Source: Oculina patagonica
Lineage: Eukaryota
Reading direction: 5' to 3'
NCBI RefSeq assembly: GCF_052425735.1
Contig: NC_135763.1
Coordinates: 23,188,001-23,252,000 of the forward strand
Length of the DNA stretch: 64,000 bases
A program made the translations under genes and the position numbers. The notes under the pieces are model-generated. The model was not told the DNA's origin. It worked only from the letters and a program-made list of their open reading frames with translations, and made no database searches. Position 1 is the first letter of the stretch, and each line of letters starts with the position of its first letter. Below, in pieces: positions 4,004 through 64,000 of the stretch.

Positions 4004-4037
<34 letters not shown>

Positions 4038-9185: not shown

Positions 9186-9220
<35 letters not shown>

Positions 9221-17811: not shown

Positions 17812-18132
17812 CTGTAAAAAAGTGAATGAATGAAAATGAATGTATACGCGCTTGAGATCATTTTTCATACAGATCCAAAGAGGATAGTTGTATAAACTGG
17901 TAAATGAACGTCGATTACATACGTCGCTGTGATTACCAATAACGACTTTCTTCTAACAATATCGACACATTGTCAGGCAGAAAATTAAACAATATTTGAA
18001 GGATTTGCTTGCCATGTATCACCACATTATCCAACGGGAATGGCGCTGGCGATTAATAAGGAAATTAATGAATCTGCAGTCCGTGTTACAATTAGTTGAG
18101 ACACTTCAATCCACTTGAGCACAGAATTCATG

Positions 18133-25991: not shown

Positions 25992-26831
25992 CTAAGAGAA
26001 AAGAAACAAATAGTTGGTTACTTTTTGTACTAAGGTAAACATAGCCGGGGAGTGGTGAGGGGATACCACGTAGGATTTGAATTCCCGATTCTACATCAGT
26101 TGATTGAGTTCGCAGTGTTCGCGGTGTTTTGTAAAATGTTCCTGTACAACGCCTACACTACCTTTGATATCTAAAGTTCCATTTCCTTTCGCTGATCCTT
26201 CGACATTGGAAGCTTCACAGAAATAAATCCCAGCATCCTCTTGAGTCACATTAGCAATACTAAGTACTCCACCTCGCACAGTGCCATTCACCGGAAGTGA
26301 ACCGTTCAATTTCCGCCATGTCAGTTTTGGTGAAGGCGAACCGCTAGCGATACAGCTGAATTCTGCGGGCTCGCCTATCCTTATTCGGGATTTCCGTGGA
26401 GTAACTGTAACCTTGGGGGCCTCTGAAAACGAAAAAAGTTCATATTTTAAAGTAACTGTTGTTGATTAACAAACGTTCTCTCTTTCTTTCTTGCTTGGTT
26501 CGTTTTGCTCATCTTAAGCGAGATAATATATCGTTATGCGTTCCATGGCGCTGGTACTTGAATTAGTCACTAGGTTTTCTTTCCTCAGCTATGCCCATCT
26601 AGATTACTTTTCTCCGCAGTGAAAATTGGGTGCCAACTGGTCTGCCCCTTGCCATCTGGGATTTTAGTCAAGTTTTTTTTATTTAGAAAAGTTGTTTTTG
26701 TGTTTGTCTACATTGGTCTGAAAAGCCCCATTCATGGATTAGTTAATAAGAATCATTTCAAAGTGATAAATGATCATCGCAGTGAATTTCCACTTTAAGC
26801 AATTGGAATAAAGAAGCCTGAAAAAAATTCA

Positions 26832-26865
<34 letters not shown>

Positions 26866-29800
26866 GATACCGGTGCGATGCTCTACCAACTGAGCTATTG
26901 AAGCCACACATTGGGAGCGAGGTCAATTGTGAGTTCATATTTTACCCGTGAGAGGAGTGAAATGATGTAATGTATATGAAATGATTCATATATGAACTGC
27001 GGATGGATATGATATCACATCATTCCGATGATGTAATGTCCACATATGGACATTACATCATTTCACTCCTCTCACGGGTAAAATATGAACTCACAATTGA
27101 CCTCGCTCCCAATGCGTGGCTTCAATAGCTCAGTTGGTAGAGCATCGCACCGGTATCGCGGAGGTCACGGGTTCGAATCCCGTTAAAGCCCTGAATTTTT
27201 TTCAGGCTTCTTTATTCCAATTGCTTAAATTGGAAATTCACTGCGATGATCATTTATCACTTTCATATAAATCCGCAGTTCATATATGAATCATTTCATA
27301 TACATTACATCAAGAATCATTGCGTTATTTATTTTACGGTTTGAGCGCCGCGTGACCACGAAGTAACGGTTGCGAATGAGTCTACGTCTACATTAACTTT
27401 GTTTTGATAAACTTTGACACGAACCTTGTACAAAGACAGCAACTTGGGACTGCACAGAGCCAACTCTGTTGGTAACATTGCAAGCATAGGCTCCCCCGTG
27501 TGAATGCCGGGCGTTGGCGATAACCAGAAGTCCGCCTTCTATAACTATTCCCTCGGGTAAGGGACCACCAACACTGGACCATACAATTTCAGGTTTTGGG
27601 ATTCCCGTCCCGCGACACTCAAGTGTTAGTGAGCCGCCCACTGGTACAGTTTTGACTGACGCTCCGCCTGTTATAGAGACACTAGGAAGATCTGGAAAGA
27701 AAAGAAAGAAACAAAGTAAGAAAAGCTTTGAATAGCAATTATTTTTTTTTAAAGTTTAACCTGTCACGAGCATTATCAAACTGTCATAAGTTCAGCTAAG
27801 CTTCTACAGTAAGCTTTTCATACTATTTATACGTCGAACGTACATGTTATAAAGAGGCGTTGCCAGCAAGAATAAAAGTGAAGAAAAATTGTTTCTAAAT
27901 TGCTTATCCTAACAGTATGCAGGACGCGTGTCACATAATAAACCAAGGAAATGGCCTAGCTCACCACGAGTCTCTCGTAGCTCAGTTGCTTAGAGCGCCC
28001 AACCGGTATCTGGGAGGCCATGGGTTCGATTCCCCTTTGGGGACTCAGAAGTTTTCTTTGTCCCATGCTCGTGTCATTGTTGAACAATTTTTCTTCATTA
28101 TTTATCACCGAGTTTAAAATTTACCATCCTTATTATTCACTACACTCAAGAATAAAAGTGTTTATATATCTATAACGGCGAGGAAGGTAGACGGAAGGGG
28201 ACGTTCGCACATAAGCTTATACTGATCGAGTTTAGTGAGATTAGATGATTACTAAGAGTACTAATCGAGCTTTGTTCAAGCGTCGAACTTCTCATCTGGG
28301 CATAGATTGCGGTACAGCTGCGGTACACTATGAAGTGTAACTACGGTTCCACCAAGATACATAACGGTACGACTGCGGTACGACTGGATGTGACTGGAAA
28401 ATAAGCGCGGTTCCGCCGCAGCTTGCAACTTTTTCACCAACTTCAGAAAACGACCTTGAACAAACCTTAGTTCCAAAAACATTAGCCTGGAAATTAAAAA
28501 AAACTCACAAACCTTCAACTGTGAGTATGACAGGTTTTTGAGAGAATCCAGCCGCGTTAGTAGCTGTGCATATGTACCGTCCCTCATCCAAACTCACAAT
28601 GCGTGTCAGAGTTAACACATCATTGGCAACCAAATGCCTCCTGGGAAGATCTACGCCTTCTTTCGTCCACGTAATCACAGGATCTGGTGTGCCGGTTGCG
28701 TTGCACTGGAAACTAACATTTGAATTTGGCGAGGCTACCAAGGCCTCCGGGGAGACCGTTACCTGCGGTGCAACTAAGAAAGAATCAAAATAATGAGGTA
28801 ATCAACTCCAGATTTTGGAACCAGAGAATTCGTTTTGATGATACTATGTGAAAAGAGACAACTGCTGTATAGAGGAAATGAATTTGCAAAAAAAATCGCT
28901 TTTAATTTTCATATAGAGACCTAAACCGTTGAAATGTTGCGAAGAAGAAGGCGTACAATTTGCTGAACGTCAGAGCAAGACGACTCGTAAACACGAGGCC
29001 TAAATTCTAAAACAAATGAACTCAGACAGATTATGGACTCTATATCCTCTACAGTTACATTCCCAAACTGTGTGCTATGGCAGGATGTTTTTAAGGGACT
29101 GTGTCACGGCTGAGTTTAGTTTAGTTTATTAAATTTTGAAAAATATTCGCTATGAAACTTAATGTTTGCAAAGAAATTTATTCAATGAATGACAAAGCAA
29201 TAGCTTCATTGCAACCATATGTGTCTCTCGAGCGTTATAATTTAAAGTTAAAAGCAAACAAGATATACTTTGAAAATTGTTTAGCACAAAAATATTACAA
29301 AAACCCATATCGCAATCCGTTCCAATCGCTTTTGGCCATCCGTACCTTCTTTTGTGTTTGGTGTACTTTTGAAATGTTCCTTCGCTGTTTTAAGAGGTTA
29401 TTTCAACGAATTTGATGGTCATTTGATTGCCATTATCTAAAATCCGCGACACAGTCCCTTTAACCAACTATAAATAATTCTTACCAAACACTGTGACGCT
29501 TGCAAAACCTTCACTAGAGCCCGCTGCATTGCTAGCATGACAGCGATACTTTCCGGTCTGTTCCACTTCCACCTCGTTAACAATCAGTGTTCCCTTGTCC
29601 ACCTCACTTCCGCTGGGAATACTTCCGTTAACTTTTGACCACGTCACCGGAAGTGATGGTTTAACAAGACAAAAGAGGCGAAAGGAACTTCCCTGATTTA
29701 CAGACAGCTGGGATGGAGTCACCTCGACACGGGGAGGAACTAGGTTAAAAGAAAAAAGGCCTCGTTAATGTGGTGTACAGTTTGGTGGTACTTGACAATT

Positions 29801-32110
29801 TATCTCTAATCACATATCTAGTGGGGAGGTGAGTTCGAGCAGTAGGATCTAAAAGACACCGTTAACTTTAAATTACGTATATACAAGTAAAAGTTTCCGT
29901 TTGCTGAATTTCTCTTCTGCTGCGATCTTCCTCCCCTTCTTGACTTGTACTTTGGCAACCTCGTCTCTAGGGCGCTTTTCCTTCAAATGTAGACCCTTCG
30001 GACTGCGGACGACGTTAGAACTTCTCGTTAAAGAAATGAAGGACCTTTCTCTTTGTCGCCATAATAAAATGTCAGAAGGCATTATAGAGGGGTGCAGTGA
30101 ACTGGCAAAAGTAATAAACAGAATAAAGCGTCTAAAAGAATAAAGAGAACCTAAGCATGACAAGCAATTGCACAAAGAGAAAAAAGGTTTCAACAGAAAC
30201 AAGGAAGCCACCGAGTATTGCACTAGAAATTATTCAACATCAACTGTCACAAGGGGAGGAAGGGCGTTATTGGAAACACCAGGCGACTGTTCTAGGTTAT
30301 GTTACATTTTCTTACCTATGACCTCTAACTGCACGTTAGCGCTGTCTTCTCCTTCACTGTTCATAGCCTTACAAAAGTATACCCCTGCGTCTTCTGGGCC
30401 TGCAGACGGGATGATCAGCAGTCCATTCCTATCAAGTGCACCGTTGGGTAGATCAGAGCCCAGTCTCTCCCAGGTTATACTCGGAGTTGGTATACCAGAC
30501 GCGTTACAGCGGAACTCGGCCTTTTCACCTTGGATAACCGTATTAGAAATAGATTCCACGGTAACTTCTGGAGCTTCGTGTGCCACAGTAACTGGACAAA
30601 AATCAAATTTGATCTCATATAAATGGTAATAAAATAACTTACTGAGACGACTTGAGGTTTATAAACGTACTAGCAAAACACTGAATCAACTTCGTTTGTC
30701 CTGACTTCTCCCTGGTAGGAGAGCCAAAGTTTACACGAAAAAGTGTTAGCTCGCTCCCCAGGGTCACCCCTACCTTCAAAGCCAGTGACCCTGTGCTAAC
30801 TTTGATATTTTCATGGCATAAGAAATATAATAGTGGAATCCTGATTTGTTGAACCCTCAATTTTTCGAAACTCGCGATAACTCAAACGTCAAATCGTTTC
30901 TCATTGCTTCTCTATTTCAAACACCTCAGCCTTATCTCCCCGTTGTCCTCTAAATTCCGATGTATCTCAATCCACTTTTTTTTCCATTGGAAATCCGAGA
31001 AATCAGGATCCACTGTAGCTGACAACTCAAAATTCGTCATAGACTCGTAAAAAACCTTCAAAGAATATACCTTATTATAGGAATATAAGGAAGCATTTTA
31101 ACAACGCGAACAAAATTTACGCGTAATAAAATTAACGCGAATTTAAGAAACGTTCTGCATATTCCTTATGCTAAAAAAGTTAACGTCAATACAATTAACG
31201 CGAATTCTTGAAATTCGCGTTAATAACATGTATCGTTAATTTCCTATAATAACGTATACATTTATTTACCTATCAACTGAACACTTTCCCGCGCTGTTCC
31301 CACCAAGTTTCTTGCTTGGCACGTGTAGTTACCCTGATCCTTTGCTCTGGCGTCCTCTATCATCAGTTTAAACAAACCAGGCCTGCTTTCTATCTGCTGG
31401 AGATTGGGTCGAGAATTCTCTGGAGCAATCCACTGAACAGACGGAGGTGGGTCACCTGCGGCTGCGCATTCCAGCGTGACTGTACTACCAGCTGTCACGG
31501 ACACAAGACTTGACGGGCTAACTATGATGTTGGGTTCACCTGGGTAATGGATCAAGTATGAAGAGTCGATCCCTTTAACGCATGACAATAGGTTTCTTAC
31601 ATATAAAGGTGGTATATACCTATAAAACTCTTTAAATCTCCCATGATTGACATATGTATTTCCTTCACTAATTAAAACACTTTTGTTAGTTAGTTCTCAT
31701 AACTTGAAGTACACCAAGACAATACCTCCGAATTATTAGATGTGACCTTCTTGGGAATTAAACGGTTACAAAACCATCAGCAGTTGTTTTGGCAAGACTT
31801 TTCATAACGATCTTAGCTAAGAACCTTTGACAGGCAAAAGTGATCAAAATCCTTTCAGATTGACACAACACTCAAGATTGCTTGGTTTAATTTATGCTTT
31901 TCTATGTAGAAAAAAGAGTGTTGTCCTACTATTAGCGGTTTGGAGATCTGGAGGTTTAAAGCGCGTTCGTTTGGGATCAATCCGGAATAAGAATAATTAG
32001 AATAATGCGAGTAATCGTTTGTTTGGGTGCTCTTCTCATTCCGGAATACTTGGATTTCCATATCGCAGGAGCAGAATAGTCGGGATGGAAATCCAAACAT
32101 TCCGGAATAA

Positions 32111-32145
<35 letters not shown>

Positions 32146-35100
32146 GCTTAGTACATCAACACTTCCTCACTAAACCAAGGTGTGCAAATCTGTTCCAGGT
32201 CTGGGGGAACCTTATTATGATGCTGGGGGTTATCCGCTCTGGACTAAAATCCCATCTAAGGGGAGTAGTAATAACCCTAGTCACTCATGTTATGGAAACC
32301 GGGATAAGCTCCGGTCACGTGGGTTAGTCAGGTTGTAGGAAGACTTGTCCTTTACACATCGTCTTTCGCAGAAATCACAATTGGGCATAGACCTCTGTGT
32401 CTGATAACGAAATGATAAAAGATTGAAACACAGAGAAGGCACAGCAGTGACATAATTTTGCAATGCGAGTTAACGCCAGATAAATCTTGCCAGTCTTAAC
32501 GGTTCTTTCGATAATTGATGTATGTTACATTGATTACCTTGGACGATAAGAAGAGCGATAGCCTCGGTGGATCCCATGTCGTTTGTTGCCTTACAAATGT
32601 ACTTTCCCTGGCTGTCACCAGAGGCCGGCGAAATCACCAAAACACCGTCATTACTGCTGTTCAGCGGTTCATGTTCCTCTCTTTCCCAGACCACTGCAGG
32701 AGGCGGGTTACCAGCCTTGACTACACACCGGAACACCACAGTCTCTCCTCCCGTAACTGTAAGCCTTCTTGCTGGCATGATTTCTATCTTTGGCATCTCC
32801 TTACCTGAAAGGGCGAAAACATATGCTCTCATTTCGTTGCCACGTAAAGTCCTTTTGTATTTTCCCATTTGAGGTGAAACCAAATTTTAACTATCAATTA
32901 TTGCAATGACATCTGCAATTACCGATATATCACCGGTAGATGTTCTCTGATAAGGACGATAAACCGTAGGCGCCGTCTCCTCCATCTGAAGTGTTATGAT
33001 CAGCAGGGGACGTTAAAGAACCCACACACTTATCGCAAAGAGTAGGGCACGGAGTTGTGGTCTGACCAATTCACATGTATCCATGGCCATGGGTGGGTGG
33101 TGGAACGAGATCACATACAAGGACAGATAGCGGCTGCCAAAGGCACCTGATATGCTAATGTCCGATCTCGTCCCGTAACTCTAACTGTGAAGCGCATTTT
33201 GGGATTTGTAAATGCGCTATACAAGTACCATTACCATTGCCATTATGTGGGACCCTTTTGCCAAGGACAAAATTCCTAGTTTTTGTTACTCACTTTTGAC
33301 GTTGACAATGCCTGTTGCTTGCTTGACTCCTTTCTTGTTCTGGGCCACGCACACATACATGCCTTCGTCCTCTTTTGTCGCTTCTTGGATTTGCAACAAT
33401 CCCTCGGTTACCACGTGATTGTCTGTTAACTCCTCACCAACTCTTGTCCACTGTATTGAGGGGTAAGGATCCCCCGAGACCTGGCATGAAAGAAGTGCTG
33501 AGGCACCTTCGTCGACAGTTTGATTTGCTGGTGAGACGACTGCAGTTGGACGCACCGAGGTATCTAAGAAAGAACGAGATGGAATCAAGCTTGTAAACCA
33601 AGGGACCCATTTTACGAAACATGCACCCTTCCTTAGCAGACAGCATAAAATGCCGGCGGTGAACAGAATTTTAACACTTGACAACATAGAAACAGAACTT
33701 ATTCTCTTATTGGCAACATTTGGAATAAGACAAGTTCTTTTGGGTGAAGTTATATTGTAACGCGTCATAATATATTACCAGATTACTCATCGTTTTGTTG
33801 GTTTTTTACATCTCAGGCAATCCAAGACTCAACAAAATATACAACAACCACCCATGTAATTTCTCGAAATATAGGCATTTGGCTTGTGTATCCAAATGTC
33901 ATAACTAACAAAATTAGACCACAATGGATCGAGCATATGATGTCGAAATGAAGATAAATTCTGGAGTGGGAACTTGTTACGTTAGATTTGAAGACGTTTG
34001 TCCTCTTTACCTCTTTCGACAGTGAGAGTGACCAAGACTCCATCGGCTCCAAACGTATTAGCAGCTGTGCAAACATAGGCACCACCGTCCTCCAGCGTCG
34101 TCGGTAAAATACTTAGCAAGCCGTTCACAGAAGAAGAAGATTGAGGCAGTTGACCGTTTTCACGTGACCAGCTTATAGTTGGAGTCGGGTCTCCTTTTGC
34201 AGAGCACTCGAACCGGGCCTCTTCACCTTCTAAAACTGTGAGCGTGTTAGGAGTAACGGAGATTGTAGGGACACTTCCGGGAGCTACAAGAAATAAAATC
34301 AAAGAAAAGAGCAAAGGTTGAGATCGAAAGATCTAAAAAAGAGAAACTTATCGTTTGAGAAGTTATCAATATTATGTTGGTACATGGTAACGATTGCAAT
34401 CTGGCGAAACGATATCATGACCTTGCAAAAGTTGTTAGTACAAGCCATAACACGTGAACGACGAGAATTGTATTTGGTGTACTGGCTCAGAAATCTTAGA
34501 ATTGATGAACCACTAAAGCTGCTTATGGTGTCTTATTTAAACGTCATCATGTCGTTCTTATACTGAGCAAAAATAGAGATAGATAGCATCACACTTAATC
34601 TTGCCGCAAACGGCACAAAATCCCGCTTGTCGGGTGACACTTGGACATTTCGTTTAATCGTAAAGGGATAATTTAGGAAGCTGACGCCTCATCCATTGTT
34701 ATACAAGGTGCTTTTAAACATTCTGTAACTAAGGAATCGCCTTCATACCCGAGACATTCAAGAAGGTTCCCGTGCTAGATATACCGCCCAAGTTGGAAGC
34801 TGTACAGAAGTACTCTCCTTGGTGTACTTTTTTTACTGCATCAAATGTCAGCAGACCGTTGCCATTGGAAGTTTTGGCTTCTGGTGGTAGTCGACCGCCA
34901 GGACCACCGTGCCATTGGAGCACTGGGGCGGGAAATCCAGAAGCCGAGCAACGGAATTGAGCAGCGTCTCCCTCTCGGACGCTAAAACTGGCAGGACTTA
35001 CAGAGACTTGGGGCTTTGTTACTAAGAAAGAATAAAATTGGTAAGTATCGCATGCGCCGCATTTAAATTGATAGCTTAACTAACCTGCGATCAGGCGTTC

Positions 35101-38100
35101 TTTTTTCTTTTTCGAAAGGGAGAGGGGAAAAAGAACGCCTGATACATTTATTTAACCAGCCACCAACCGCCCCCTAATTTAAATTAAATAAACTAAAGTG
35201 TCGTCGAGCTGTCAAACCACTCTTGTAGTTGGCGGCAAATTGAGACTCGGAATTCTACCAGGCGTGAAAAATGTCTGCATAAAACTTCGCCGTGCTGACA
35301 TAAAAATGCTTTTAGTAGCAGGGTGAGATGGCGCTTGCGAACATGTATTTATCAGCTGTAGATGCCGTCCCTTTATTTCAGCTCACAAAAAAAAAAACAA
35401 GTAATTCACCTACAAGAGCTGTTTCACGACAGATAGGATCATGTCGCGTTTGTAAACATTCCAACACCTCAGGAATATCGGGAGTAAATTAAACTTTCCC
35501 GAAACGCATTGGAAGAACTGCCAAAACATTTTATCGAAACCAAATTACGCATCGTCGCACAGTCTATCTGTTCTGCCTTCAGACAATTACACTTGAAATA
35601 TGTCAGGGCTTTAGCTAACGTAGAAGAGAACTCGTCCTCGCAGTAAACACGCCGCTTCTAAGCTTCTGACCGGAAGTCTCGTTAAAGTACGACAGCCAAT
35701 CAGTCCACACCACTTCATTGAGTATTGTTTCTCGACCAATCAGAAGAAAAACCAGAATCCGGTTTTTTTTACATGACTTTCGATAAGCAAATGTATCATG
35801 CCCTCCTTCCCCCGCTCAGCAGTAAGGAGGGAGGGCATGATTTCAGGTTATAGCTTAACCAGCTATAAGGTGATGGACTCTCACCTCCCACTCTCAGTTG
35901 TACGGAGACCATGTCTTCGTTAAAGGTGTTTTTACCAGTACATGTGTATGTCCCTCCATGGATCGTCTGGGTGTGCTCAATGGTCAGTACACCGTTGTTA
36001 CTCTCGGCCCCATCAGGAAGCGCACCATACATGCCACGTGTCCACTTGAGCTTGTAATCAGTGACACTCTTAGCTCTGCACGTGAACTGAGCTGTTTGGT
36101 TCAAAGAAACGTGAAGGACTTTTGGTGACACTGACACGCTGATGGGATCCACGCGCCGAGCTAATTCATAACACAAAAGACGATATGATTAAAACACCCG
36201 TACCCAAATTACAACAGAAAGACGAGGCGAAAGCCAAAAGTTTCAAGTATATAATTATGACAATAAAAAGGTCAAAAATGGAATAAATCTCACGTGAATC
36301 TATCGACAGTTGCGGAGGAGATAGAAAACAAACGCCATTACAAGTTGAGGTCCAACAACGGTTACTACCCCGAGATAAAGAGAACGTTGTTTTGAAAATC
36401 ACGATAACAAACTTGCTAAGATTACTACAAAATCTGAATTATCATCATACCATATCATCACGTCGTTTTTTCCTAAAGAAAGAACGTTCAAGCGCAGAAA
36501 CCTAATCGCGTAATTCTCGATGTTTTGAAATATCTTCTTTTGTCTTTTGCCCCGTGCGGTGTCACGTCCCAGCTTCGACGAGCTGGACTAAGGCCAAGTA
36601 AACTCAATAGACCAAACACAGGAACGTTTCCTTTTCCTATAGAAGTTTTATTTCAAGCACGCGCTATTATAGGCTGAAGTTGGAAATGGCGGAGTTTTTA
36701 AACTAATCTATTATCTCAGGTATCACTGTTTCGGATAAATGAGATTACCGTTGAAAACTCTTCGCGTTTCTTACCTTTAACATTCAGTTGCGAGGTAGCC
36801 GTTTCAAACCCGTACACATTTCTAGCAGTACACACATAAGCTCCTTCATCTTCTTTCCTGACTCTCCTAATCAGCAAGACCTTCCCAGACACAACCACCC
36901 TACTGGATAACGGCTTTCCATTCTGTCGGGACCACGTAATTCTTGGTCGTTGTTTTCCGCCAGCAAAACAGTAGAATATGGCATCTTCTCCTTCCGTCTT
37001 TGTTCTTTTCCTGGGCCTGACTATTACAGTTGGCATGAATCCCGCTAGAAACAGAGGAAATTACAGAATAAACTTTTAGTCTGAGCGATGTCGGTCTCAA
37101 TATGGGCAAAGACGTTTGGAATAAAATTTTAAACGAAAAAACATTGTCAAGAATGAAGATACCCCCGGTGGGAAACTATGATGTAAACATCCCTCCTAGT
37201 GCAACTCTTTTCGGCTTGTTCGCTCTTGCTACGTCTATCACGAACAGGAACCCTTATCACCTTTCACCCGTGCATAAACCAGTCTACGGACAAATGCTAG
37301 TTTTGATTAATCTTCATAAAAACACTTAAAAATTTTCCGATACTTATTGCCCAGTCACAGATAGTACGAGCAACTCCGAGGACTGTGTTTGTCAGCTAGG
37401 GAAGATGTCACGTTACCAAGCAGTATCGCAGCCCAGCCGTAGACAGCACGATCACTTAATGGAACTCTCAGTGATATCTTACCTGGTAGTTTGACACACT
37501 TTTGGCCCGGTTTGGTAGGATCGCCACTATATCCCTTAGCACATCTGTAAACATGTAAAGCCGTTAAGGTTAAGCCCCAGTATAAAAGTATGAAAGGTCA
37601 GAATCAAATAAAGGAAAACCAATAAACTAACGAAGGTTAAAGTTATTCACCACATGAGCTGGAAAGGGAGTCATTCCCTTTCCCTTAACGTTACGTTTAA
37701 TTGCTGAAATGGTAAGCCTTAAAATGTTCAAAATAAATTTAACAAGTTATTTGAAAAAGAAAGCATCGCACGGCAACTGACATGGGTTTATCAACGTGTC
37801 CTTCTTGCGATTGTGGATTACTGTATAACTAAAGGTTAACACCACCCGCTTTGTTAGCTATTTATCGAGTCAGCTCAAACTGGGAGTTCGGTTCTAAAAC
37901 CCCCGTGATTGGGTGTTAAAAGAGTATGTAGAGAACTTGTGTCCATGACAAAGGAAGGTTTTCGTTACCTGTTACAGGTCCTACCAGTGTAACCAGTTTG
38001 ACAGGCAGTGCAAGTCGGTTGACCGTCTGAATCAATCTTACAGACCCGGCTGAACCTGTTTATTATATACGGAAAGTCAACGTTATTAAAGGAAACAGCC

Positions 38101-41100
38101 AACAATACCTATTTTATAAACGGATTTACTGTGTCACTCACTGGTTCGAAGCAGTAGTCAAAGGGCATGGGCATGGTTCACAATCTTTGGGCGTTCCTTT
38201 CGTGGCGTCACCATAGAAACCAACTGCACATCTTTCACAGTGGAAGCCTGTGGTGTTGTGATCGCATCTCTGGAAAAAATGCCATTAAGATGTTAAATTA
38301 ATTTTACATTTTCTGTAGGAAGAAATTGATCCAGGAGAGAGAATAACCTCCAATAAGTTCTCTCATGAGAGGACATACTCTCTATGCGGGGAGGGTACGG
38401 CAGTGTAAGGCTGGACAAGGTCGGGCGTTGACTTGAATTTTTTCCTCTTTTTTTTTCGACTAGGTAAACTTTTTATGTTTAATTATTGGTAAGAGGAAAG
38501 CTTCACGTGGCATATATGGACATATCATCGGTCACACATTTCCTGCCGGGTTGCAATGAGCTATCAGTTTAAATATTTATGATGTCTCGTATGGGTCCCG
38601 GCGGCACATACCCACATAGAACAATACATATACTTACCCTACATTGTCCTCTTTCCGGATCACATTCCTTTGAATGTTGATTACAGGAACATGGCACACA
38701 GGGAGAGAAATCCGGGCCTTGGGACGAGCGTGTGTATCCAAGGCCACAGCGCTGAAATGTAGAACAGACAAAGAAACTGGCGTGCGCTCATCAAGTCATG
38801 GATGTGCACAGGAAAGGCACGACAAAGGCGTGAGGTGCTGCCAAGAAGGTTTGCCTAGCTTCTCATGTTCATTCTTAACTCGTTAAGTATGGAGGAGTTT
38901 GTTTTTATGCTACACATAGGCGCAAAGAAATACAGAAAAGCGAAATCTATTCGGGCTTTTAAAATCTCGTTGTTTGATATGCGTAAGCGCGGTGAACGAC
39001 TAAGATAAAGATATTGGATTTAACAAGGGGTGAGAAAATGCCATAGATCCAAACATTCATTTCTGGTCTGTTTACAATGTAAAAGTGTTCAAGCATAAAT
39101 AGTTTAACAGTGGCAAAACAAATTAAATTAAGTTCTTGCTTATAACTGGATTAACCTTTCCTGTGGTCCCTGCAAAAAGTTCACACGTGCACGACATTGA
39201 AAAAGGGAATGAAAAAAGCATTACATATCGTTATATTGTGTTTTATGAACAGACGAGAGGAGAAAACACTGAGATTGACACGAAAAGTGATCCACCGGAA
39301 ACATTTTCTATGTGAGCCTGCAAGCTTACCTGACAAGACGTTCCAGAGTATTCTGGTGGGCATGCGCACTGTTCGATGTTTTTGGCTTTTCCGAACCTTG
39401 TTTCTTGAGGGATAGCGGTTTCCAAATTGACACTATAAAGGCTGGTGAACAAAAACAATTGCTTAATGTAATAAAATTATTGTCTAATACAAGATTTCAC
39501 ATTGTTCATTTGCATTTCTAATTAATGAAAAGGAATAACGTACTCTGATCTTCATTCTGCCATTTCGGATTTTATAAGGTTTTTAAGAGTCCTTTCCTTA
39601 CAATCTTACAATCTGATAATAGAAGCAACCCTGTGACATCATATCGGCTAAAATGGTGGCCTACAGAAAATTCATACCCGAAATCGTTAGTATTTGTTTC
39701 CAATTGCGTTTTCAGTGCATCTCAACAGGTTTTCAGTTTAGACATTGAATATTTCTAACAATGTAACAGCTATTTGTTCCAACGGTGGTAGCTTAATATT
39801 GGAAGCTTGCAAAAGCCCCCGATGTTTGTTCAATGTGAATTCTCACTTTTCGACGTTATAATCTTTTAATCAAAACTTACAGAAAGTTTAGTAGTCGATC
39901 ATTGCTTGGGGTTAACAGCAATGTTAACATGCCAAGCTTACTGTAACAGCAAGCTTGTTACAAGAACCCTAACCTGGCCTTTGTTGTGGTGGTACTGTAC
40001 GTCGCACGGACTAAGATGCTTTCCACAGAAGACAAGAGTGTCATCACAATATCTCTTGTTACACGAACACCGTCCGGGTACCTTAACCAGCCCTAATAAG
40101 GTTAAATCAGTTTGAGAGGCAACACAGGTTATACAGGAAAAAAAACATACAACTCATTATAATTATCTTAGACGTTAAGACATGGTTAATAGTTTCACAA
40201 TAATAAAGTCGACAAGGACTTTTCTGTTCTTGAATGGCATTTCAATACTGAGTTGTTCATGCTATTATATTATTTGTTCGTTCACTGTACTTACCTCGGA
40301 CAGTTTGAGGCCGTATGTCTTTTTCTGTCCTCCCTCGAGGGGCCTTCTATGACGAAAAGTAAGAACAATTCCTCTTCCCTGAAAGGTCAAAAAACCAACA
40401 CTTTGAGAAACAGTGGGATAGTCACTTTCACTGACCAGAAAAGATTTGGCAAACTAAAACAAATTTTTGGGGAGAAACCATCAGTATTATCTTCGGAAGA
40501 ATCCATTTTAATCACGTGGTCAAAGTGTCAGACTGTGTATGCCCGATATAGCACGCCTTAGTTGGTTGAATTTTATAAAAGATGTAAGCTTGAAGTTTAG
40601 CTGCTGCTATGCCGGGTGCTACGGTAGATTAAGCCACTCGACCTACCCTCAGTTGTACGTCTGTATCAGTGGTTAGTTCGCCGTCTGGCTTCATCTCGTG
40701 TGACACCGTGTAACGCAAAATCCCGTCATAGCTTGTCATCTGTAAAAAAGTGAATGAATGAAAATGAATGTATACGCGCTTGAGATCATTTTTCATACAG
40801 ATCCAAAGAGGATAGTTGTATAAACTGGTAAATGAACGTCGATTACATACGTCGCTGTGATTACCAATAACGACTTTCTTCTAACAATATCGACACATTG
40901 TCAGGCAGAAAATTAAACAATATTTGAAGGATTTGCTTGCCATGTATCACCACATTATCCAACGGGAATGGCGCTGGCGATTAATAAGGAAATTAATGAA
41001 TCTGCAGTCCGTGTTACAATTAGTTGAGACACTTCAATCCACTTGAGCACAGAATTCATGTGTCCGTTTTTGCATCTCACTATGTGAAGTCTCAGATTAT

Positions 41101-57600: not shown

Positions 57601-60600
57601 TCGAACCCACGATCCTTTGAAGTATAACAGAGGTTTAACGTCCTGTTTCATATCATATATTTGCGAGACCTGAAAAAACGCTGCGAGAAATTGATCTCAC
57701 AAGTTATAAATTTTTCAGGTATACATTTTAATGTTGTAGTCACATACAACACAACTCTTTCATTATCAAGACTGTTTAACAACAATGCCAATGGATAACC
57801 ACACAGGTGACCAAAATAAGTAAATGTTTCAACTTGCGGACGTTGTCGAGATATGCCACCAAATCCATAGATCGAGCCAATATTAAAACAAATTTTAAAG
57901 TTTTCATCTTGAAAGCAAAATAATAAACTTACCTCGCAAGACAGTCCACTGTAGCCCACTGGGCATTCACACTGTTCTACCAACAAAGCCTTTCCAAAAC
58001 CTACGTTGTGTTGAGATGAAACGTCCAGAGAGATGTCTTCAATGCTGTGCAAAGAAAAAAGTCATAGTTGGCCACTTGGAGAAGAAAAGTTCAATTTCTT
58101 AAACACCAAAAGTTGGTCATGTACCTCAATGACATGGCACTAGATTCATGATCACCATACTGGGCTCTAACATAGATGGCTTGAACGTCCGATAAAACCC
58201 TCATGAAAGTGTCCCTGGAAGTTGGTGCTCCGTTAGATGAACGCCATTTTTCCTAAAAGACGATGATAAAAAAATAAGGTAAAAAGGTTTTCTACACTTT
58301 CGCTTCTGTCAATACATTAGTGTTATCTGCAAAGGGAAAAAATTAAGAAAGATGGACGGTTTTATAATTACACACTGGTTCCTTACAACAATCATTTGTC
58401 ATGTTCGGTAACTTTTAATCTAATTTTCACAAATACCTCTGTGAGAGAGACCTCCATTGTTGTTTGATATTTTCCAGCGCTAGGCTGCACTTCAGGATGA
58501 AAGACCAAGATTCTGTCTTTTCCCTAAGAAGCAAACATTGACATTGATACGCTATCATAGCAAGCCTACACTACTCGAGGTATTCTTTGTTCGCCGGACA
58601 TCTTCATCGTCGAGCGAAACCTTTTCTTAACGATATTCACGACTAATTTGTGTTTGTTTTAGCTTTTTACCGTACCCTTCGGTACCGAGCGGCCGACCCG
58701 CGCGAGAGACAGGGAGTGACACGAAGGAGAGGCCACGCTGGGGTGAGCGGGGAGCCCCGCCAGCACGAGGCGGGGCGAGGCGAGACGAGAAGAGATGGAG
58801 TGAAGGGAAGAGGAAGAGAGGGGGAGCGGAGGGACGTACGAGGCGGGGCGGGAAACCGGATGGCTGAAGGGAGACCGGGTACGCCGTGACAGGCCGGGCC
58901 GCAGGGGGCGAGCGCCGCAAACGAACCAGGCCGACAACTGCGAAGACGAGCGACCAAAAGGTACGATAGGTATAAGAATTTGCTTAAAAGAGTTACAAAA
59001 CGGATACTACATCTTAAAAAACGTAAGTTAAATTTCCAATTTGGCTTTGAAATCCCTCCCATTCTTGGACATTCTTGTTCCTTTTGGTTAAGAAATATCC
59101 CTTTTTATTTCTTCTTCTTAAATTGGCATTTGAGCATGGCAGAAAATACCTTTGTTTTTGGTTTAACGAAACCGTCCAATATCAAGCAAGTAAAAATTAC
59201 TTTAAACAAGAACGAACCGTCTCTTGTCTAATGCAGATTCCGCTAATTTTGGCTGGTTTATTTGCACTGTTGGTGGTCATTATGGTTGGTTTTATCTGTG
59301 ATTGTTAGGCTTAGAAAATTTATTAGTTTAACAAAACAATAATAATGGAATGCAAAAAATAACATTTTTTGAAACTTTTGAGCGATTCATAAACCAAAAA
59401 TTCAATTAAGCTTTCCTTAAAATTTTTTAACCTGAACAAATGTCTATGACAAGAGGATCACATTAATAATCCATACCACCAATCGAACGGCCCCTCTGAC
59501 TCGACTAGATGTGGGAGATGGTGTGACCGTGGTTTGAGTAACAGCCGGCGTTGTCATCGTTGTATCTAAGAAAAGAATATACAGTAAAGATTACTCAACT
59601 CGCAGCGATCTATTCTTGTGTTGCCATAAACATAAACATAAGTTGTAGGTCAACTGCAGATAAACAACGATCGCAGGAGAAAATGATCCTGATAATGAAG
59701 AAAGCTGTGAAGCTGCAAATTGTCCCTAGATTAACTGAAATACACTTGACCCTCTTACCATCTACCCTGATGCATGTTTTCTCTACACAAACACAATTGC
59801 TGTTTTCCACGAGTAAGCGAGACTCCACTTCGTTTTCGTTAACTTCACAAAGGGGAGCATCCTCAATACAAAGTGGAGCACAACGAAGACTCCCATCTTC
59901 AAGGCACGAGCAGCGGGATGTGCAACTCTTAGTGACGAAGACGCTATTTGCTGGATAAAATTCATGGCCGACTTGACACCTTATTGCTGACTCTAAAAGA
60001 GAATATCACTTTAAAGAAACCTAATTACAATTTGGAGGGCCACATTTGCTCTCTTTTTGGGCCTTAGATATGTTCATCTAAGCCCAACAAAATCTTGTAA
60101 ACTTTGTCTTTTGACACGGATAAATTAACAGAATGGTTGCCATTTAACGTAAGTCAATTCCATGAAAAATAAACTGCAAAGCAAGTTAAGCATTGGAAGA
60201 GTTAGAGTTAGTGTGTAAGGCATATATTTTAATTTTTAAACTCATTTCTATTTACGAAAAGAAAGAAAAGGCAGAGCAGGCGTTTGTAAAAATATCACCA
60301 TCTATGATCCACAATTTAAACAAACCTGTTGAAGTCACTCTTTTTGAAGTTGTCTCCTTTCTCGACGTTGTAGAAGACACAGTGGTAGAAATAAGCCTTT
60401 TAGTACTGTAGGATGAGACAGGCTCTGTATTGGTTGTTTCATCTTGATCATCAGTCGACACACTCGTTACTGCATAAGATGTATCTATTGTTGTCACTGT
60501 GTCCGTGGTAGGCTTTTCAGTACTGTTAGTCGAAGAAGGCGCATTAGTAGTTGTTTCATCTTGATCATCCGTCGACGTGCTTGCTGATGTGAAAGACGTT

Positions 60601-63600
60601 CCCGGAACTGTTGTCATTGTTTCCGAAATAGGTTTAGCAGTACTATAAGGTGAGGAAGGTACTGTAGTGGTTACTTCATCTTGACCATCGAATGCTGCAT
60701 CGGTTGTCGTGTAAAGTATTGTATTTTGTAATTTGTGGTTTTTTTTTTTTTTTTTTTTGCGTATCTGGTATTGTTGTCACCAATTGTGAAGTAGGTGCGT
60801 CAGAACTGTATACTGAAGGGGGCTCTGTAGTGGTTGTTTCATCTTGGCCATCCGTTGATACAATCGTCGTTGTCTGAAATGTACTTGGTATTGTTGTCAC
60901 TGTTGGAGAAGTCTGCTTGTCAGTACTGTACATTGATGAAGGCTCAGTGGTAGATGTTTCATCTTGGGTTTCGGTCCATGTATTCGTTGTTGTGTGAAGC
61001 GTATCTGGTATTGTTGTCCCTGAAGTGGGCGCATCAGTACTGTAGGCTGAAGAAGGCACAGGAGTGGTTGTTTCATCTTCACTATCAGTGGATGTATTCG
61101 TTGTTGCGTAAACCGTATCTGGTATTGGTGTCACAGTTTCCGATGTGGGTTTATCAGTACTGTTAGTTGAGGAAGGCACAGTAGTAGTTGTGTCATCTTC
61201 AGCATCCGTTGATAGATCCGTTGCATAAAACGTGCTCGGTATTGTTGTCAATGTTTCTAAAGTAGAACTGTCAGTACTGTAAACTGAAGGGGGCTCTGTA
61301 GTGGTTGTTTCATCTTGACCATCCGTTGATGCATCCGTCGTTGTCTGCAGCGTACTTGGTATCGTTGTCGCTGTTGGAAAAGTTTGCTTGTCGGTGCTGT
61401 ACAATGATGAAGGCTCAGTGGTAGATGTTTCATCTTGGGCTTCGGTCCATGTATTCGTTGTTGTGTGATGCGTATCTGGTATTGTTGTCCCTGAAGCGGG
61501 CGCATCAGTACTGTAGGCTGAAGAAGGCACAGGAGTGGTTGTTTCATCTTCACCATCAGTGGGTGTATCTGTTGTTGTGTAAACAGTGTCTGGTATTATT
61601 GTCACTGTTTCCGATGTGGGTTTATCAATACTGTAATTTGAAGAAGGCACAGTAGTCGTTGTGTCATCTTCAGCATCTGTTGATAGATCCTTTGTATAAA
61701 ACGTACTCGATATTGTTGTCATTGTTTCCGAAGTGGAACTGTCAGCACTGTAAACTAAAGGGGACTCTGTAGTTGCTGATTCATCTTGACCATCCGTTGA
61801 TAAAATCGTTATTCTTTGAAACGTACTTGGTATCGTTGTCGGTGTTGAAAACGTTTGCTTCTCAGTGCTGTAGGCTGCTGGAGGCTTAGTAGTGGTTTTT
61901 TCATCTTGACCATCGGTTGTCGTGTAAAGCGTATTCGGTATTGTTGTCACTAATTGCGAAGTAGGTGCGTCAGTACTGTAAACTGAAGGGGGCTCTGTTT
62001 TGGTTGTTTCTTCTTGACCATCTGTTGATGTATCCGTCGTTGTCTGAAGCGTACTTGGTATCGTTGTCACTGTTGGAAAAGTTTGCTTGTCTGTGTTATA
62101 CGCTGACGAAGGCTCAGTGGTGGATGTTTCATCTTGGGCTTCGGTCGATGTATCAGTTGTTGTGTAAACCGTATTAGGTACTGTTTTCACTGTTTCCGAT
62201 GTACGTTTATCGGTGGTGTAAGGCGACGAAGATACAGAAGCGGTTGTCTCATCTTGACCATCAGTTGGTGTATCTGTTGTCGTGTAAACCGTATCTGTTA
62301 TTGTTGTCGCTGTTTCAGAAGTAGGCGGGTCAGTACTGTAGGCTGAAGAAGACACAGCAGTGGTTGTTTCATCTTCACTATTAGTGGGTGTATCCGTTGT
62401 TGTGTAAACCGTATCAGGTATTATTGTCACTTTCTCTGAAGTAGGCGGGTCAGTACTGTAGGCTGAAGAAGGCACATCAGCGGTTGTTTCATCTTCACCA
62501 TCAGTTGATGTATCTGTTGTTGTGTAAACCGTATCTGGTACTGTTGTCGCTGTTTCAGAAGTAAGCGGGTCAGTACTGTAGGCTGAAGAAGGTACATCAG
62601 TGGTTGTTTCATCTTCACTATCAGTGGGTGTATCCGTTGTTGTGTAAACCGTATCAGGTATTATTGTCACTGTCTCTGAAGTAGGCGGGTCAGTACTGTA
62701 GGCTGAAGAAGGCACATCAGCGGTTGTTTCATCTTCACCATCAGTTGATGTATCTGTTGTTGTGTAAACCGTATCTGGTACTGTTGTCGCTGTTTCAGAA
62801 GTAAGCGGGTCAGTACTGTAGGCTGAAGAAGGTACATCAGTGGTTGTTTCATCTTCACTATCAGTGGGTGTATCCGTTGTTGTGTAAACCGTATCAGGTA
62901 TTGTTACTGTTTCCGAAGTAGGCGGATCAGTACTGTAGGCTGAAGGAGGCACAGCAGTGGTTGTTTCATCTTCACCATCAGTTGATGTATCTGTTGTCAT
63001 GTAAACCGTATCTGGTATTGTTGTCACTGTTTCCGAAGTAGGCGGGTCAGTACTGTAGGCTGAAGAAGGCTCAGTAGTGGTTGTTTCATCTTTACCATCA
63101 GTTGATGTATCTGTTGCTGTGTAATCCGTATCTGGTATTATTGTCGCTGTTTCAGAAGTAGGCGGGTCAGTACTGTAGGCTGAAGAAGGCACAGCAGTGG
63201 TTGTTTCATCTTCACTATCAGTGGGTGTATCCGTTGTTGTGTAAACCGTATCTGGTATGATTGTCAATGTCTCCGAAGTAGGCGGGTCAGTACTGTAGGC
63301 TGAAGAAGGCTCAGTAGTGGTTGTTTCATCTTCACCATCAGTGGGTGTAACCGTTGTTGCGTAAACCGTATCAGGTATTGTTGTCACTGTTTCCGATGTG
63401 GGTTTATCAACACTGTAAGTCAAGGAAGGCACAGTAGTTGTTGGGTCATCTTCAGCATCTGTTGATAGAGCCTTTGCATAAAACGTACTCGATATAGTTG
63501 TTATTGTTTCCGAAGTGGAACTATCAGTACTGTAAACTGAAGGGGGCTCTGTAGAGGTTGATTCATCTTGACCATCCGTTGATACAATCGTCGTTGCCTC

Positions 63601-64000
63601 AAACGTACTTGGTATTGTTGTCACTGTTGGAAAAGTTTCCTTGTCAGTGCTGTAGGCTGATGAAGGCTCAGTAGTAGTTGTTTCATCTTGGACATCGGTC
63701 GATGTATCCGTTGCTGTGTAAAGCATATCTGGCATTGCTGTTACTGTTTCTGAAGTAGGCGCGTCAGTGCTGTAAGGTGAGGAAGGCATATTACTGGTTG
63801 TGTCATCCTGACCATCAGTGGACGTATCCTTTGTTCTGTGAAGCGTATCTGGTACTGACGTCGGCGGGTAAGTACTGTACGCCGAAGGAGGCACAGAAGT
63901 GGTTGTTTCATCTTCACCATCACTAGATGGATCCATTGTTGTGTTAACCGTATCAGGTATTGTTGTCACTGGTTCCGATGTAGGTTTATTCGCACTGTAA
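19433..64000 (-). CDS. HSPG2: Perlecan / basement membrane heparan sulfate proteoglycan core protein-like gene, 5'-partial, 54 exons
   Basis: Exons 5'->3', all GT-AG and phase-consistent by manual translation: >64000-60326, 59992-59759, 59565-59477, 58523-58437, 58252-58125, 58044-57933, 57438-57334, 57169-57042, 56077-55991, 55244-55186, 54322-54246, 54083-53943, 52521-52330, 52157-52065, 50388-50305, 50210-50092, 49970-49859, 49604-49485, 49406-49279, 48957-48871, 48030-47975, 47630-47554, 42497-42357, 41490-41302, 40739-40647, 40378-40295, 40092-39974, 39441-39330, 38751-38638, 38269-38142, 38055-37969, 37544-37483, 12 Ig exons (37044-26162), 25991-25790, 25081-24789, 24328-24065, 23145-22366, 21921-21843, 21662-21587, 20550-20501, 20339-20256, 20147-20044, 19596-19433 (ends ...[13 protein letters not shown]). 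The order LamB/LE x3, Ig array, LamG/EGF x3 matches perlecan domains III-V. Confidence 0.9.
20807..21356. mobile_element. hAT-like MITE
   Basis: 11-bp TIR caggggcgtag / ctacgcccctg. No 8-bp TSD is visible. Confidence 0.45.
23432..23859 (+). mobile_element. Copy-specific insertion, Penelope-like (pseudo-LTR) or retrozyme-like non-autonomous retroelement
   Basis: Absent from the other copy (empty site near 1033-1044). Flanked by the 12-bp direct repeat cttagaaaggca (23420-23431, 23860-23871). Imperfect inverted ends (gacaatagaaagcaagg / ccttgcttttcttgtc). Contains a hammerhead ribozyme. Confidence 0.8.
23721..23765 (+). ncRNA. Type I (minimal) hammerhead ribozyme
   Basis: actctg-CTGAAGA-gacc-caatca-ggtc-GAAAC-agct-GTC-cagagt. 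Stem I actctg/cagagt, core CUGANGA, stem II gacc/ggtc, GAAA, short palindromic stem III, GUC cleavage triplet at 23757-23759. Confidence 0.88.
26162..37044 (-). CDS. HSPG2: Perlecan domain IV: 12 Ig (I-set) domains, one phase 1-1 exon each
   Basis: Exons 37044-36775, 36160-35885, 35021-34749, 34283-34011, 33563-33294, 32804-32538, 31539-31270, 30591-30316, 29739-29485, 28773-28513, 27691-27425, 26422-26162. Each has C...W...GxYxC Ig hallmarks and a length divisible by 3. Confidence 0.93.
26760..27311. mobile_element. Duplicate of the inverted tRNA-related element
   Basis: Corresponds to 3932-4483. The right TSD copy carries one substitution (aagaatcattgc). Confidence 0.8.
27881..28146 (+). 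mobile_element. Duplicate of the second tRNA-related element
   Basis: Corresponds to 5053-5317 with the same TSD. Confidence 0.78.
37483..59565 (-). CDS. HSPG2: Perlecan domain III: three laminin IV(B) plus laminin-type EGF repeats
   Basis: Motifs [12 protein letters not shown]|[18 protein letters not shown]|[54 protein letters not shown], CxHNTxGxHCxRC, CPCPL. Confidence 0.92.
41234..41291. repeat. (AAAC)n microsatellite
   Basis: Direct reading. Confidence 0.95.
41626..42009. mobile_element. Degenerate Kolobok-like MITE, related to 6266-6630
   Basis: TTAA-aggaacagtgtcac ... gtgatactgccat-TTAA, similar length. Confidence 0.5.
42728..43341. mobile_element. piggyBac-like MITE
   Basis: TTAA TSD (42724-42727, 43342-43345). 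TIR ccctttcagtgct / agcactgaaagag with 1 mismatch, CCC start. Confidence 0.8.
45529..45594 (-). CDS. Candidate alternative first coding exon encoding a signal peptide ([22 protein letters not shown])
   Basis: ATG with A at -3, basic then hydrophobic 22 aa, perfect CAG|GTAAG donor in phase 0, compatible with exon 42497. Confidence 0.4.
48575..48760 (-). mobile_element. tRNA-derived SINE
   Basis: On the minus strand: ggcagcgtggcc head, B box gggttcaagtccc, body gcttgtaaatagccaactgg. A 3' remnant of the same family lies at about 3805-3905 (+) and its duplicate. Confidence 0.65.
50943..51014. repeat. Hairpin/inverted repeat, probably a transposon remnant
   Basis: ttatttttaggca ... tgcctaaaaataa, 13-bp perfect arms with further imperfect pairing inside. 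Confidence 0.6.
52612..52700. repeat. Compound tetranucleotide microsatellite (AAGC/TAGG/TAAG)
   Basis: Direct reading. Confidence 0.85.
52826..53330 (+). mobile_element. Crypton-like non-autonomous element: short N-terminal coding remnant plus long palindrome
   Basis: 52983-53141 translates [52 protein letters not shown], resembling the RF..SEEE...NT..T N-terminus of CryptonA/DUF3504 proteins. Palindrome gcatgatatcgtgaattatcaaaac...gttttgataattcacgatatcatgc at about 53228-53303. Confidence 0.6.
56355..56941. mobile_element. Tc1/mariner (pogo/Tigger-like) MITE
   Basis: TA TSD. 23-bp TIR cagtagaaccccggtaactcgaa / ttcgagttaccggggttctattg with 1 mismatch. Many internal aactcgaa repeats. Confidence 0.85.
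59759..59992 (-). CDS. HSPG2: VWC-like cysteine-rich exon ([78 protein letters not shown])
   Basis: 234-bp phase 1-1 exon with a ttttag acceptor and G|GTAAG donor. The C-x3-C-x-C-x2-DG-x3-C-x-PLC pattern resembles von Willebrand factor type C modules. Confidence 0.7.
60326..64000 (-). CDS. HSPG2: Giant mucin-like exon: acidic Thr/Ser/Pro-rich 40-aa tandem repeats, open beyond the window edge; one apparent frameshift at 60717-60759
   Basis: ORFs 60676..63969 and 60252..60617 share the repeat ([39 protein letters not shown]-like). The frame stays open to 64000. Donor ACA G|GTTTGT at 60326/60325 is phase 1 and fits the next exon. Membership in the perlecan transcript is inferred from splice phases. 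Confidence 0.75.
60760..64000. repeat. Coding minisatellite with a 120-bp unit and higher-order 240-bp and 471-bp blocks
   Basis: Lines 62341/62461/62581/62701/62821 start identically. 62401-62640 is nearly identical to 62641-62880. 60954 vs 61425 repeat at offset 471. Confidence 0.95.

Follow-up and report, generated by a model that had tools for sequence, protein, structure and literature searches.

A long mucin-like insertion in the first laminin IV domain of a coral perlecan-like gene

Perlecans described from vertebrates (HSPG2), Drosophila (Trol), C. elegans (UNC-52), Nematostella and Trichoplax (perl) share one order of modules around and after domain III: LDLa, three laminin IV (L4) domains set in LE arrays, I-set immunoglobulin (Ig) domains and LamG/EGF modules. 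In mammals and birds, domain I is an N-terminal SEA module with Ser-Gly-Asp (SGD) sites. To our knowledge, the L4 domains of described perlecans are uninterrupted, and domain III contains neither a mucin nor a VWC module. The L4 domain is a carbohydrate-binding-module-like β-sandwich of unknown function, and in laminin (4YEP/4YEQ) it forms a unit of ~180 residues inside an LE module (PMC4834066). Domain III of Nematostella perl is an ordinary Laminin B/EGF array, and an N-terminal glycosaminoglycan (GAG) consensus and O-glycosylation sites were not found in that protein (Warren et al., PMC4398486). An N-terminal SEA module with SGD sites has been reported for Trichoplax perlecan (PMC4398486). 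Here we analyse a gene of the coral Oculina patagonica that follows the same module order and lies in a 64,000-nucleotide stretch of contig NC_135763.1 (the window; G000:C6:23,188,001-23,252,000) and the sequence beyond it. It differs from the described perlecans in having an N-terminal LamG_3 domain and one LDLa module upstream of domain III, and in ~1,600 extra residues carried by its first L4 domain (L4-1). We consider it highly probable that L4-1 is split by a transcribed and conserved mucin loop of ~1,600 residues, predicted to bear glycans, and that its two halves refold into one sandwich. The literature that we searched on perlecan with mucin, coral or laminin IV gave no account of such an insertion.

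The gene is on the minus strand, and positions past 64,000 are given as ext, the window numbering carried on through the next 39 kb. In the direction of transcription, it encodes LamG_3, LDLa, LE, three L4/LE units, an I-set Ig array and LamG/EGF modules (Table 1). An LE half-domain exon lies between the LDLa and YW exons. Each of the three L4 units has its own set of YW..GNK, SYGG and C-half exons, with LE exons interleaved, and the C-halves match the Laminin_B profile (PF00052) at 35.2, 27.3 and 28.0 bits, above the cut-off of 22.4 bits. About 12 Ig-like exons follow within 37,060-26,094, and the two that were scanned match I-set/Ig_3. The exons described here have canonical splice sites (AG/../GT; a slash marks an exon boundary), and their junction phases fit (1-1, 1-1 and 0-0). 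A Pfam scan of the upstream exons found no SEA module at the N-terminus, where the exon before LDLa encodes LamG_3. The fly, worm and Nematostella perlecans lack domain I as well (PMC4398486), so the lack of SEA does not exclude membership of the family. The perlecan identity proposed in an initial annotation of the window is therefore reasonable, resting on module order and with an N-terminal LamG_3 in place of SEA. The genome contains one locus of this kind, and the mucin exon is the only long exon of the gene. We conclude that a single minus-strand gene encodes a perlecan-like proteoglycan.

We located the break in L4-1 by comparison with repeats 2 and 3, in each of which, as the initial annotation had noted, one intact 93-bp exon connects the N-half of the domain to the exon that follows. 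On the Laminin_B profile, the YW exon covers positions 1-13 and the SYGG part positions 8-27, and the break therefore falls inside the stretch normally covered by the 93-bp exon (positions 13-43). The initial annotation had left two options, a first L4 domain split by a very large loop with its N-half beyond 64,000, or an N-terminus replaced by mucin and VWC. The first is borne out: a YWxLP..GNK exon lies beyond the window edge and the SYGG strand opens the mucin exon. The existence of this N-half upstream rules out the second. Both the YWxLP..[FL]GNK and the SYGGxLxY motifs are present and conserved in repeat 1. On the far side of the break, the 89-bp Thr-rich exon had been correctly recognized. 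It begins with 2 nt of a split codon and ends in phase 0 with RGAVRLV, the counterpart of the ..PDIILV and ..TDVQLR ends of the normal 93-bp exons, so that RGAVRLV/GKDRILVFH aligns with APDIILV/GKDE.. and DTDVQLR/GRGIVLTF. The extra material thus sits between the SYGG strand and the following hairpin, where one 31-codon exon is normal. Giant, cassette and return exons together amount to 4,573 + 234 + 89 = 4,896 nt, or 1,632 codons, compared with the usual 31, and the continuous sandwich of ~140-180 residues expected of an L4 domain is broken in repeat 1 by ~1,600 residues. LE halves flank L4-1, as they do laminin L4, and the cysteines of the split LE domain are kept on both sides. Because L4 itself lies inside an LE domain, the insertion makes a three-level nest, one level more than in laminin, with the mucin, and sometimes a folded Cys-rich module, inside L4.

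Some details of these exons call for comment. The sequence PPRHIRSLGE, which follows the SYGG strand, was considered as the true PDVxLxG strand or as a relic of exon duplication; we rejected it, as ..AVRLV/GKDRILVF aligns much better with repeats 2 and 3 and sits on a conserved exon boundary in every species. In repeat 2, no AG directly precedes the GKDE codons, so this exon probably starts 12 nt earlier. A PDB sequence search with a 93-bp L4 exon returned nothing usable.

The giant exon has an acceptor at ext 64,941 (..ttattatcaaag/CTA, phase 0), preceded by a polypyrimidine tract and AG. Its first codons (LSSYGGKLRYTVSY) encode the same L4 strand with which the 93-bp exons of repeats 2 and 3 begin. 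This 19-residue L4 strand region is followed by a conserved acidic linker of ~60 residues, which includes DLDGSGIDDPSLGDSD and the site DGSGIDD, and then by ~33 repeats of 40 residues rich in T/S/D/E/P/Y (period 120 nt, 74% nucleotide matches; 26 copies inside the window). Threonine makes up 28.5% of the exon product, serine 13.7%, aspartate 10.5%, proline 8.7% and glutamate 6.4%. Ser and Thr together account for 42%, acidic residues outnumber basic ones by 257 to 60, and there is no Cys. Long Ser/Thr/Pro-rich tandem repeats without Cys are the mark of a mucin-like (PTS) region. Although the DNA is AT-rich, the frame stays open over 1,431 codons, far above chance, and no stop occurs at the window edge. 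The mucin of more than 1,300 residues reported by the initial annotation is thus a real exon; its full extent is 1,524 codons (4,573 nt) once a 43-nt stretch that breaks the frame in the reference is removed, and it starts outside the window. The mucin repeat has no match elsewhere in the genome, so it expanded in place.

Table 1 Features of the perlecan-like gene in and beyond the window (ext, window numbering continued past 64,000; listed in the direction of transcription)
Feature	Position	Strand	Details
LamG_3 exon	upstream of LDLa, beyond window	-	Pfam PF13385 (Laminin_G_3), 56.9 bits
LDLa exon	ext 67,079-66,921	-	Pfam PF00057, 52.7 bits
L4-1 YWxLP..GNK exon, LEIQLK..EYYWILPEQFLGNK	ext 65,483-65,301	-	splice sites
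Giant mucin exon	ext 64,941 (G000:C6:23,252,941) to 60,326	-	donor ACAG/gtttgt, phase 1; 3' 3.7 kb in window
Frameshifting stretch in reference, C + A20 + 22 nt (43 nt)	60,717-60,759	-	between ..GATACG and CTTTAC..
Cys-rich cassette exon, 234 bp	59,992-59,759	-	phase 1-1; 10-Cys TILa/VWC-like module, 78 residues
Return exon, 89 bp	59,565-59,477	-	phase 1 to 0; Thr/Pro-rich linker ending RGAVRLV
L4-1 GKDRILVF exon, second hairpin strand	58,523-58,437	-	splice sites, RNA joints, orthologs
L4-1 EKW exon	58,252-58,125	-	Laminin_B profile positions 75-115; PF00052 35.2 bits (cut-off 22.4)
Last L4-1 exon, into second half of split LE domain	58,044-57,933	-	84-89% identical in orthologs
Intact 93-bp exon, L4 repeat 2 (VTSYGG..APDIILV)	52,157-52,065	-	Laminin_B positions 13-43
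Intact 93-bp exon, L4 repeat 3 (MTSYDG..DTDVQLR)	40,739-40,647	-	Laminin_B positions 13-43
LamG and EGF exons	25,134-22,277	-	downstream of Ig array

We compared the locus with contigs of relatives. Seven of these (L012-L018) were taken from 28 matches to the LamG_3 exon (28-90% identity, many on long contigs), and an eighth, L010, is a 6-kb metagenome contig found by a pattern scan for the conserved block RGFVANY.IDDVRDEE. Records of the relatives include ERZ25067879, ERZ25067556, ERZ25067868, ERZ26692694, ERZ28654940 and Ga0126343. In six relatives (L010, L012-L015 and L018), whose LamG_3 exons are 76-56% identical to that of the coral gene (L012 75%, L013 68%, L014 64%, L015 56%, L018 57%), the SYGG exon runs into 848-1,603 stop-free codons rich in T/S/D/E. 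L010 has the LamG_3, LE and YW exons and then an exon starting LSSYGG.. that is open for 848 codons to the end of the contig. The other five share the exon order LamG_3, LE, YW, giant, return strand and GK[DE] exon; their giant exons open with [LI][STA]SYGGK[LF]R.., are open for 873-1,603 codons and are alike in composition. The return strand ..[EAD]AV[RL][LIM]V (..EAVRLV, AAVRIV and DAVLMV are among its endings) and the GKD exon are found in five of the six, the L010 contig ending before this point. L012, L013, L014 and L018 also have EKW and SIED exons, and L013, L015, L017 and L018 have the LDLa exon. Because the coral genome has one such locus, we treat the relatives as orthologs and not as paralogs. 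Compared with L010, the first 76 codons of the giant exon are 74% identical, with a synonymous divergence (dS) of 0.59 and a ratio of nonsynonymous to synonymous divergence (dN/dS) of 0.26 (0.24 for codons 20-76); they are as conserved as the folded domains in the same comparison (LamG_3 71%, YW 68%, LE 63%). The acidic Ser-Gly site, D[GA]SG[IL][DET][DT], and the acidic run upstream of it are present in seven of seven species. We conclude that six other sampled species have kept both the position and the character of the insertion.

This conservation bears on the idea that L4-1 is a relic, its halves no longer co-folding and the mucin acting as a linear spacer between a LamG_3/LDLa/half-LE head and the remaining perlecan. 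In favour of a decayed domain, the N-half matches its Pfam profile weakly, and the insertion is extreme, amounting to 50 times what the normal exon encodes. However, both halves keep their L4 motifs in species with as little as 56% LamG_3 identity, and SYGGKLR[YF][TS] hardly varies. Identity is 65-89% in the strand A[VL][RL][LIM]V/GK[DE] and in the EKW and SIED exons, and the split LE cysteines are kept on both sides of the domain. We therefore consider a relic unlikely and favour a split L4-1 that still folds.

Contigs assembled from RNA-like runs of three studies (X1, X2 and X6) and from a DNA run (X14) were aligned to ext 58,431-64,430. In X1 and X2, the intron 58,524-59,476 has zero depth while the exons are covered, and the joints are spliced, which is why we treat these runs as RNA. 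The initial annotation had predicted the junction series 60,326 to 59,992 to 59,565 to 58,523, and all three joints occur in RNA-like contigs as minus-strand GT..AG joints: 60,326 to 59,992 in X1, 59,759 to 59,565 in X1 and X2, and 59,477 to 58,523 in X2. The last of these is also present in X1, as a loose end that corresponds to the GKDR exon with four mismatches, and a loose end at 58,437 continues into the EKW exon. The 234-bp cassette is optional: in two X2 contigs, 60,326 is spliced straight to 59,565, which leaves the frame intact. RNA-like contigs cover the mucin exon from 60,326 to 64,430, and no contig aligned over this region bypasses the mucin. Skipping the giant, cassette and return exons together would keep the frame and lose the SYGG strand; therefore, no whole-exon isoform gives an intact L4-1 without the insertion. 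We conclude that the insertion is transcribed and spliced as predicted.

A partial exon could still be used, and we considered whether the insertion is mostly removed through an internal phase-1 donor, GTTG/GTAATG (~ext 64,893), joined to the Thr-rich exon. This would leave a loop of ~46 residues and make the mucin form minor or tissue-specific. GGTAAY is present in the coral genome and L010, the GN residues are retained in L012 and L013, the phases would fit, and the site lay outside the stretch compared with read contigs. Against this, the acceptors at 59,992, 59,565 and 58,523 show no loose end pointing to another upstream donor in X1, X2 and X6 contigs, and every contig that reaches the Thr-rich or VWC acceptor comes from 60,326. 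The codons downstream of the site are under purifying selection (dN/dS 0.24), and 850-1,600 codons remain open in seven species. The GN codons are missing from L014 and L018, and L018 has no separate return exon that could serve as splice target. Removal through this donor is, in our view, improbable, and the full mucin loop remains the preferred reading of the transcripts.

A further concern is that the arrangement might be an artefact, whether through misassembly or because a separate mucin gene happens to sit in a perlecan intron. The reference exon holds the frameshifting 43-nt stretch, and a near-identical 18-kb duplication lies beside an N gap in the window. Yet the layout recurs on independent contigs from six other species, as well as in DNA and RNA-like runs that are likewise independent, and spliced joints link the mucin to the C-half of L4-1. 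The RNA-like contigs run from mucin to VWC-like to Thr-rich to GKDR exon, which speaks against exons that belong to another gene or are always skipped, and the giant exon opens with an L4 strand and not with a start codon or signal peptide. We therefore give an artefact almost no credence. As for the 43-nt stretch, X14 record 10 (DNA) and X6 record 24 (RNA-like) have 8 letters where the reference has 51, exactly 43 nt fewer. The stretch is no property of the gene itself: either the allele is private or heterozygous, or the assembly is in error here. The duplication consists of window positions 1-18,132, which copy 22,384-41,060 at 98.3-99.9% identity and stop exactly at the N gap (18,133-18,632); the offset between the copies shifts by 444 bp near 23,431-23,860. 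This ~18-kb copy takes in part of the perlecan-like gene itself (L4 repeat 3, Ig array and LamG/EGF exons) and has the appearance of a haplotig retained in the assembly, or of a false tandem duplication, rather than of a real second copy.

Several points weigh against the split-domain interpretation. The refolding of the L4-1 halves and the exact course of the loop are deduced from motif conservation and not from a fold model, and the N-half exons, scored singly, match Laminin_B at 12.9 and 17.0 bits, below the cut-off of 22.4. The records class X1, X2 and X6 as RNA only by guess, their RNA status being deduced here, and contigs lose rare isoforms. RNA coverage stops at 64,430, so that ext 64,430-64,941 and the junction from the YW to the giant exon are not seen in RNA. 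A scan of metagenome contigs for the spliced YW/SYGG junction with a degenerate pattern gave no match. The reference frame of the giant exon is broken by the 43-nt stretch, and in the relative L008 the giant exon has an in-frame stop at ~874 (..DAFTNG*YDT..) where the closely related L010 has Glu, which is either a nonsense allele or an assembly error. Glycosylation, GAG attachment and a ligand of the VWC-like module are putative.

The exon layouts of the relatives preserve stages in the history of the insertion. In L018, the giant exon ends ..SRIKDAVLMV/GTATGT and the next exon begins GKDATLVF.., the boundaries being those of the normal 93-bp exon. The insertion in L018 is thus a single exon with ancestral boundaries, which indicates that it arose by expansion of an L4 loop within that exon. 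In the coral genome and L012-L015, a phase-1 intron sets off the short return exon, with donors ACATCAG/GT.. in L012-L014 and acceptors ..ag/AT or ..ag/AC in L012-L015. The cassette is intact in the coral genome and in L013 (72% identical), has decayed with a stop in L012, and is absent in L014, L015 and L018. On these sequences, the cassette is a later addition than the mucin, having entered the phase-1 intron in one subclade, and the likely order of events is repeat expansion, intron gain and, last, capture of the phase 1-1 module exon, the splicing of which now varies between transcripts. Two further contigs were uninformative. L017 has LamG_3, LDLa and LE exons, and YW and SYGG exons were not found within 10 kb downstream. 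In L016 (33-36% LamG_3 identity; the contig ends early), the layout after LamG_3 is different: a 359-codon frame (12,762-13,838) with 96% Ser and an acidic run lies between the LamG_3 and LDLa exons, a different Ser-rich low-complexity insertion in a different place.

The cassette module had been labelled VWC-like by the initial annotation, and the label is approximate. Its pattern, C..G..[YF]....C..CxC..G...C...C, is VWC-like, with an N-terminal part of VWC type, and its look-alikes in the ESM-Atlas are all VWC (score 0.83, a lead only). In the Pfam scan, however, the best match is TILa (PF12714) at 25.6 bits, under the cut-off of 27, followed by VWC2L_1st at 13.2 bits, and there is no match to VWC itself (PF00093). 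Like TILa and VWC modules, the cassette has 10 Cys in a comparable pattern; it differs from them in having CxCxxxxC and not CCxxC in its C-terminal part, and its score lies just below the Pfam cut-off. A PDB sequence search with the cassette exon gave nothing usable, and an AlphaFold2 model made without an alignment was discarded (predicted local distance difference test score 38). Shuffled extracellular modules are typically encoded by phase 1-1 cassette exons. Within the genome, the cassette is related (42% identity) only to two tandem 10-Cys TILa/VWC-like exons at G000:C5:788,700-790,500 (L011 4,683-6,481, minus strand), one of which passes TILa at 30.5 bits; this pair is a possible source family of the shuffled module.

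Other observations concern the mucin exon and its surroundings. A protein search with the giant open reading frame (region 1-190) gave no match within its length range, and a search with the first 190 residues of the exon returned two open reading frame fragments only. One, P0001, sits on the L008 contig; the other, P0002 (133 residues), is homologous to ext 64,941-64,650 with systematic T-to-I, S-to-F, P-to-L and R-to-C changes, and resembles a translation of bisulfite-converted (C-to-T) reads of a relative. Contigs of other runs skip 963, 45 and 2,085 nt in the repeat array (L006 4,349-5,313, 4,736-4,782 and 2,860-4,946), in window 62,780-64,400 and nearby. All three lengths are multiples of 3, and the skips are either frame-keeping variation in repeat number or contig collapse over repeats. 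The intron between the 89-bp and GKDR exons contains a 309-bp GC-rich stretch (58,667-58,975; ~65% GC, plus strand purine-rich) in otherwise AT-rich DNA. It is single-copy in the genome and is skipped by the main X14 DNA contig, X14 depth being lower but present there. Directly upstream of the perlecan-like gene, on the same strand, are exons of a phenylalanyl-tRNA synthetase β-subunit gene (ext 74,131-84,030), which places the start of the perlecan-like gene between ext 68,500 and 74,100. In Nematostella matrisome tables, two neighbouring perlecan models are listed, NV2.14907 and NV2.14904.

On the preferred reading, the YWxLP..GNK exon and the strand SYGGKLRYTVSY would bring the chain into the L4 fold. 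The chain would then leave it through the acidic linker, pass through ~33 repeats, the optional 78-residue TILa/VWC-like module and the Thr/Pro-rich linker, and re-enter the fold at ..AVRLV/GKDRILVF. Both L4 halves would thereby fold into one β-sandwich, and the mucin, tethered to it at either end, would stand out as a closed loop with densely O-glycosylated repeats. The acidic Ser-Gly pair (giant-exon residues 64-65) is a candidate GAG attachment site that may carry a heparan or chondroitin sulfate chain; acidic Ser-Gly clusters are the type of site used by xylosyltransferase. Loop and Ser-Gly chain together would give a perlecan without a SEA/SGD domain I its polyanionic, water-holding glycan part. 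The VWC-like cassette, where included, would be a further binding module, perhaps one that takes BMP-type ligands.

The closest parallels to this arrangement show what is shared and what is not. The SGD cluster of perlecan domain I has a counterpart in the acidic Ser-Gly cluster of the coral protein, D[GA]SG[IL][DE]D, in seven of seven species; the coral cluster, however, lies inside L4-1 and not at the N-terminus, has one conserved site instead of three, and is a putative attachment site. Agrin and α-dystroglycan, both basement-membrane proteins, owe glycan-dependent functions to long O-glycosylated PTS regions. Their mucin-like regions are comparable in composition to the coral insert, and we found no sequence similarity between them and it. 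In agrin and α-dystroglycan, the mucin is a linear stalk between domains, whereas the coral mucin is anchored at both ends in one small domain and would therefore have to form a loop.

A more specific functional proposal, which we regard as tentative, is that the split L4-1 is a device in its own right. With its invariant acidic Ser-Gly site and mucin repeats, the loop would be the carrier of GAG and O-glycans in coral perlecan, in place of the missing domain I. Since both of its ends would be clamped in one β-sandwich, it would be a closed, force-bearing bottle-brush, and inclusion of the cassette might tune growth-factor capture in the mesoglea. If a protease cut the loop, the two halves of the protein would be joined by the L4 sandwich alone, as the halves of cleaved SEA modules stay joined non-covalently. 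Inspection of the insert by eye found no strong furin-type site (R-x-K/R-R), which leaves the idea of a cleaved loop without sequence support.

The locus is an extreme case of natural insertion into a fold: the coding part of one exon has become 50-fold larger, in a β-sandwich that itself lies within LE, and the result is conserved and expressed. Its relatives keep successive steps of exon evolution, from repeat expansion within an exon through a phase-1 intron and a phase 1-1 module exon to alternative splicing and decay. Automated gene prediction and domain scans will probably split this gene or annotate it wrongly, missing the first L4 domain or cutting the model within the mucin. The insertion also offers a testable answer to the question of where the glycan-bearing part of a cnidarian perlecan lies, N-terminal GAG and O-glycosylation sites having been reported as lacking (PMC4398486). 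These features make the gene relevant to the evolution of the extracellular matrix and to the tolerance of protein folds.

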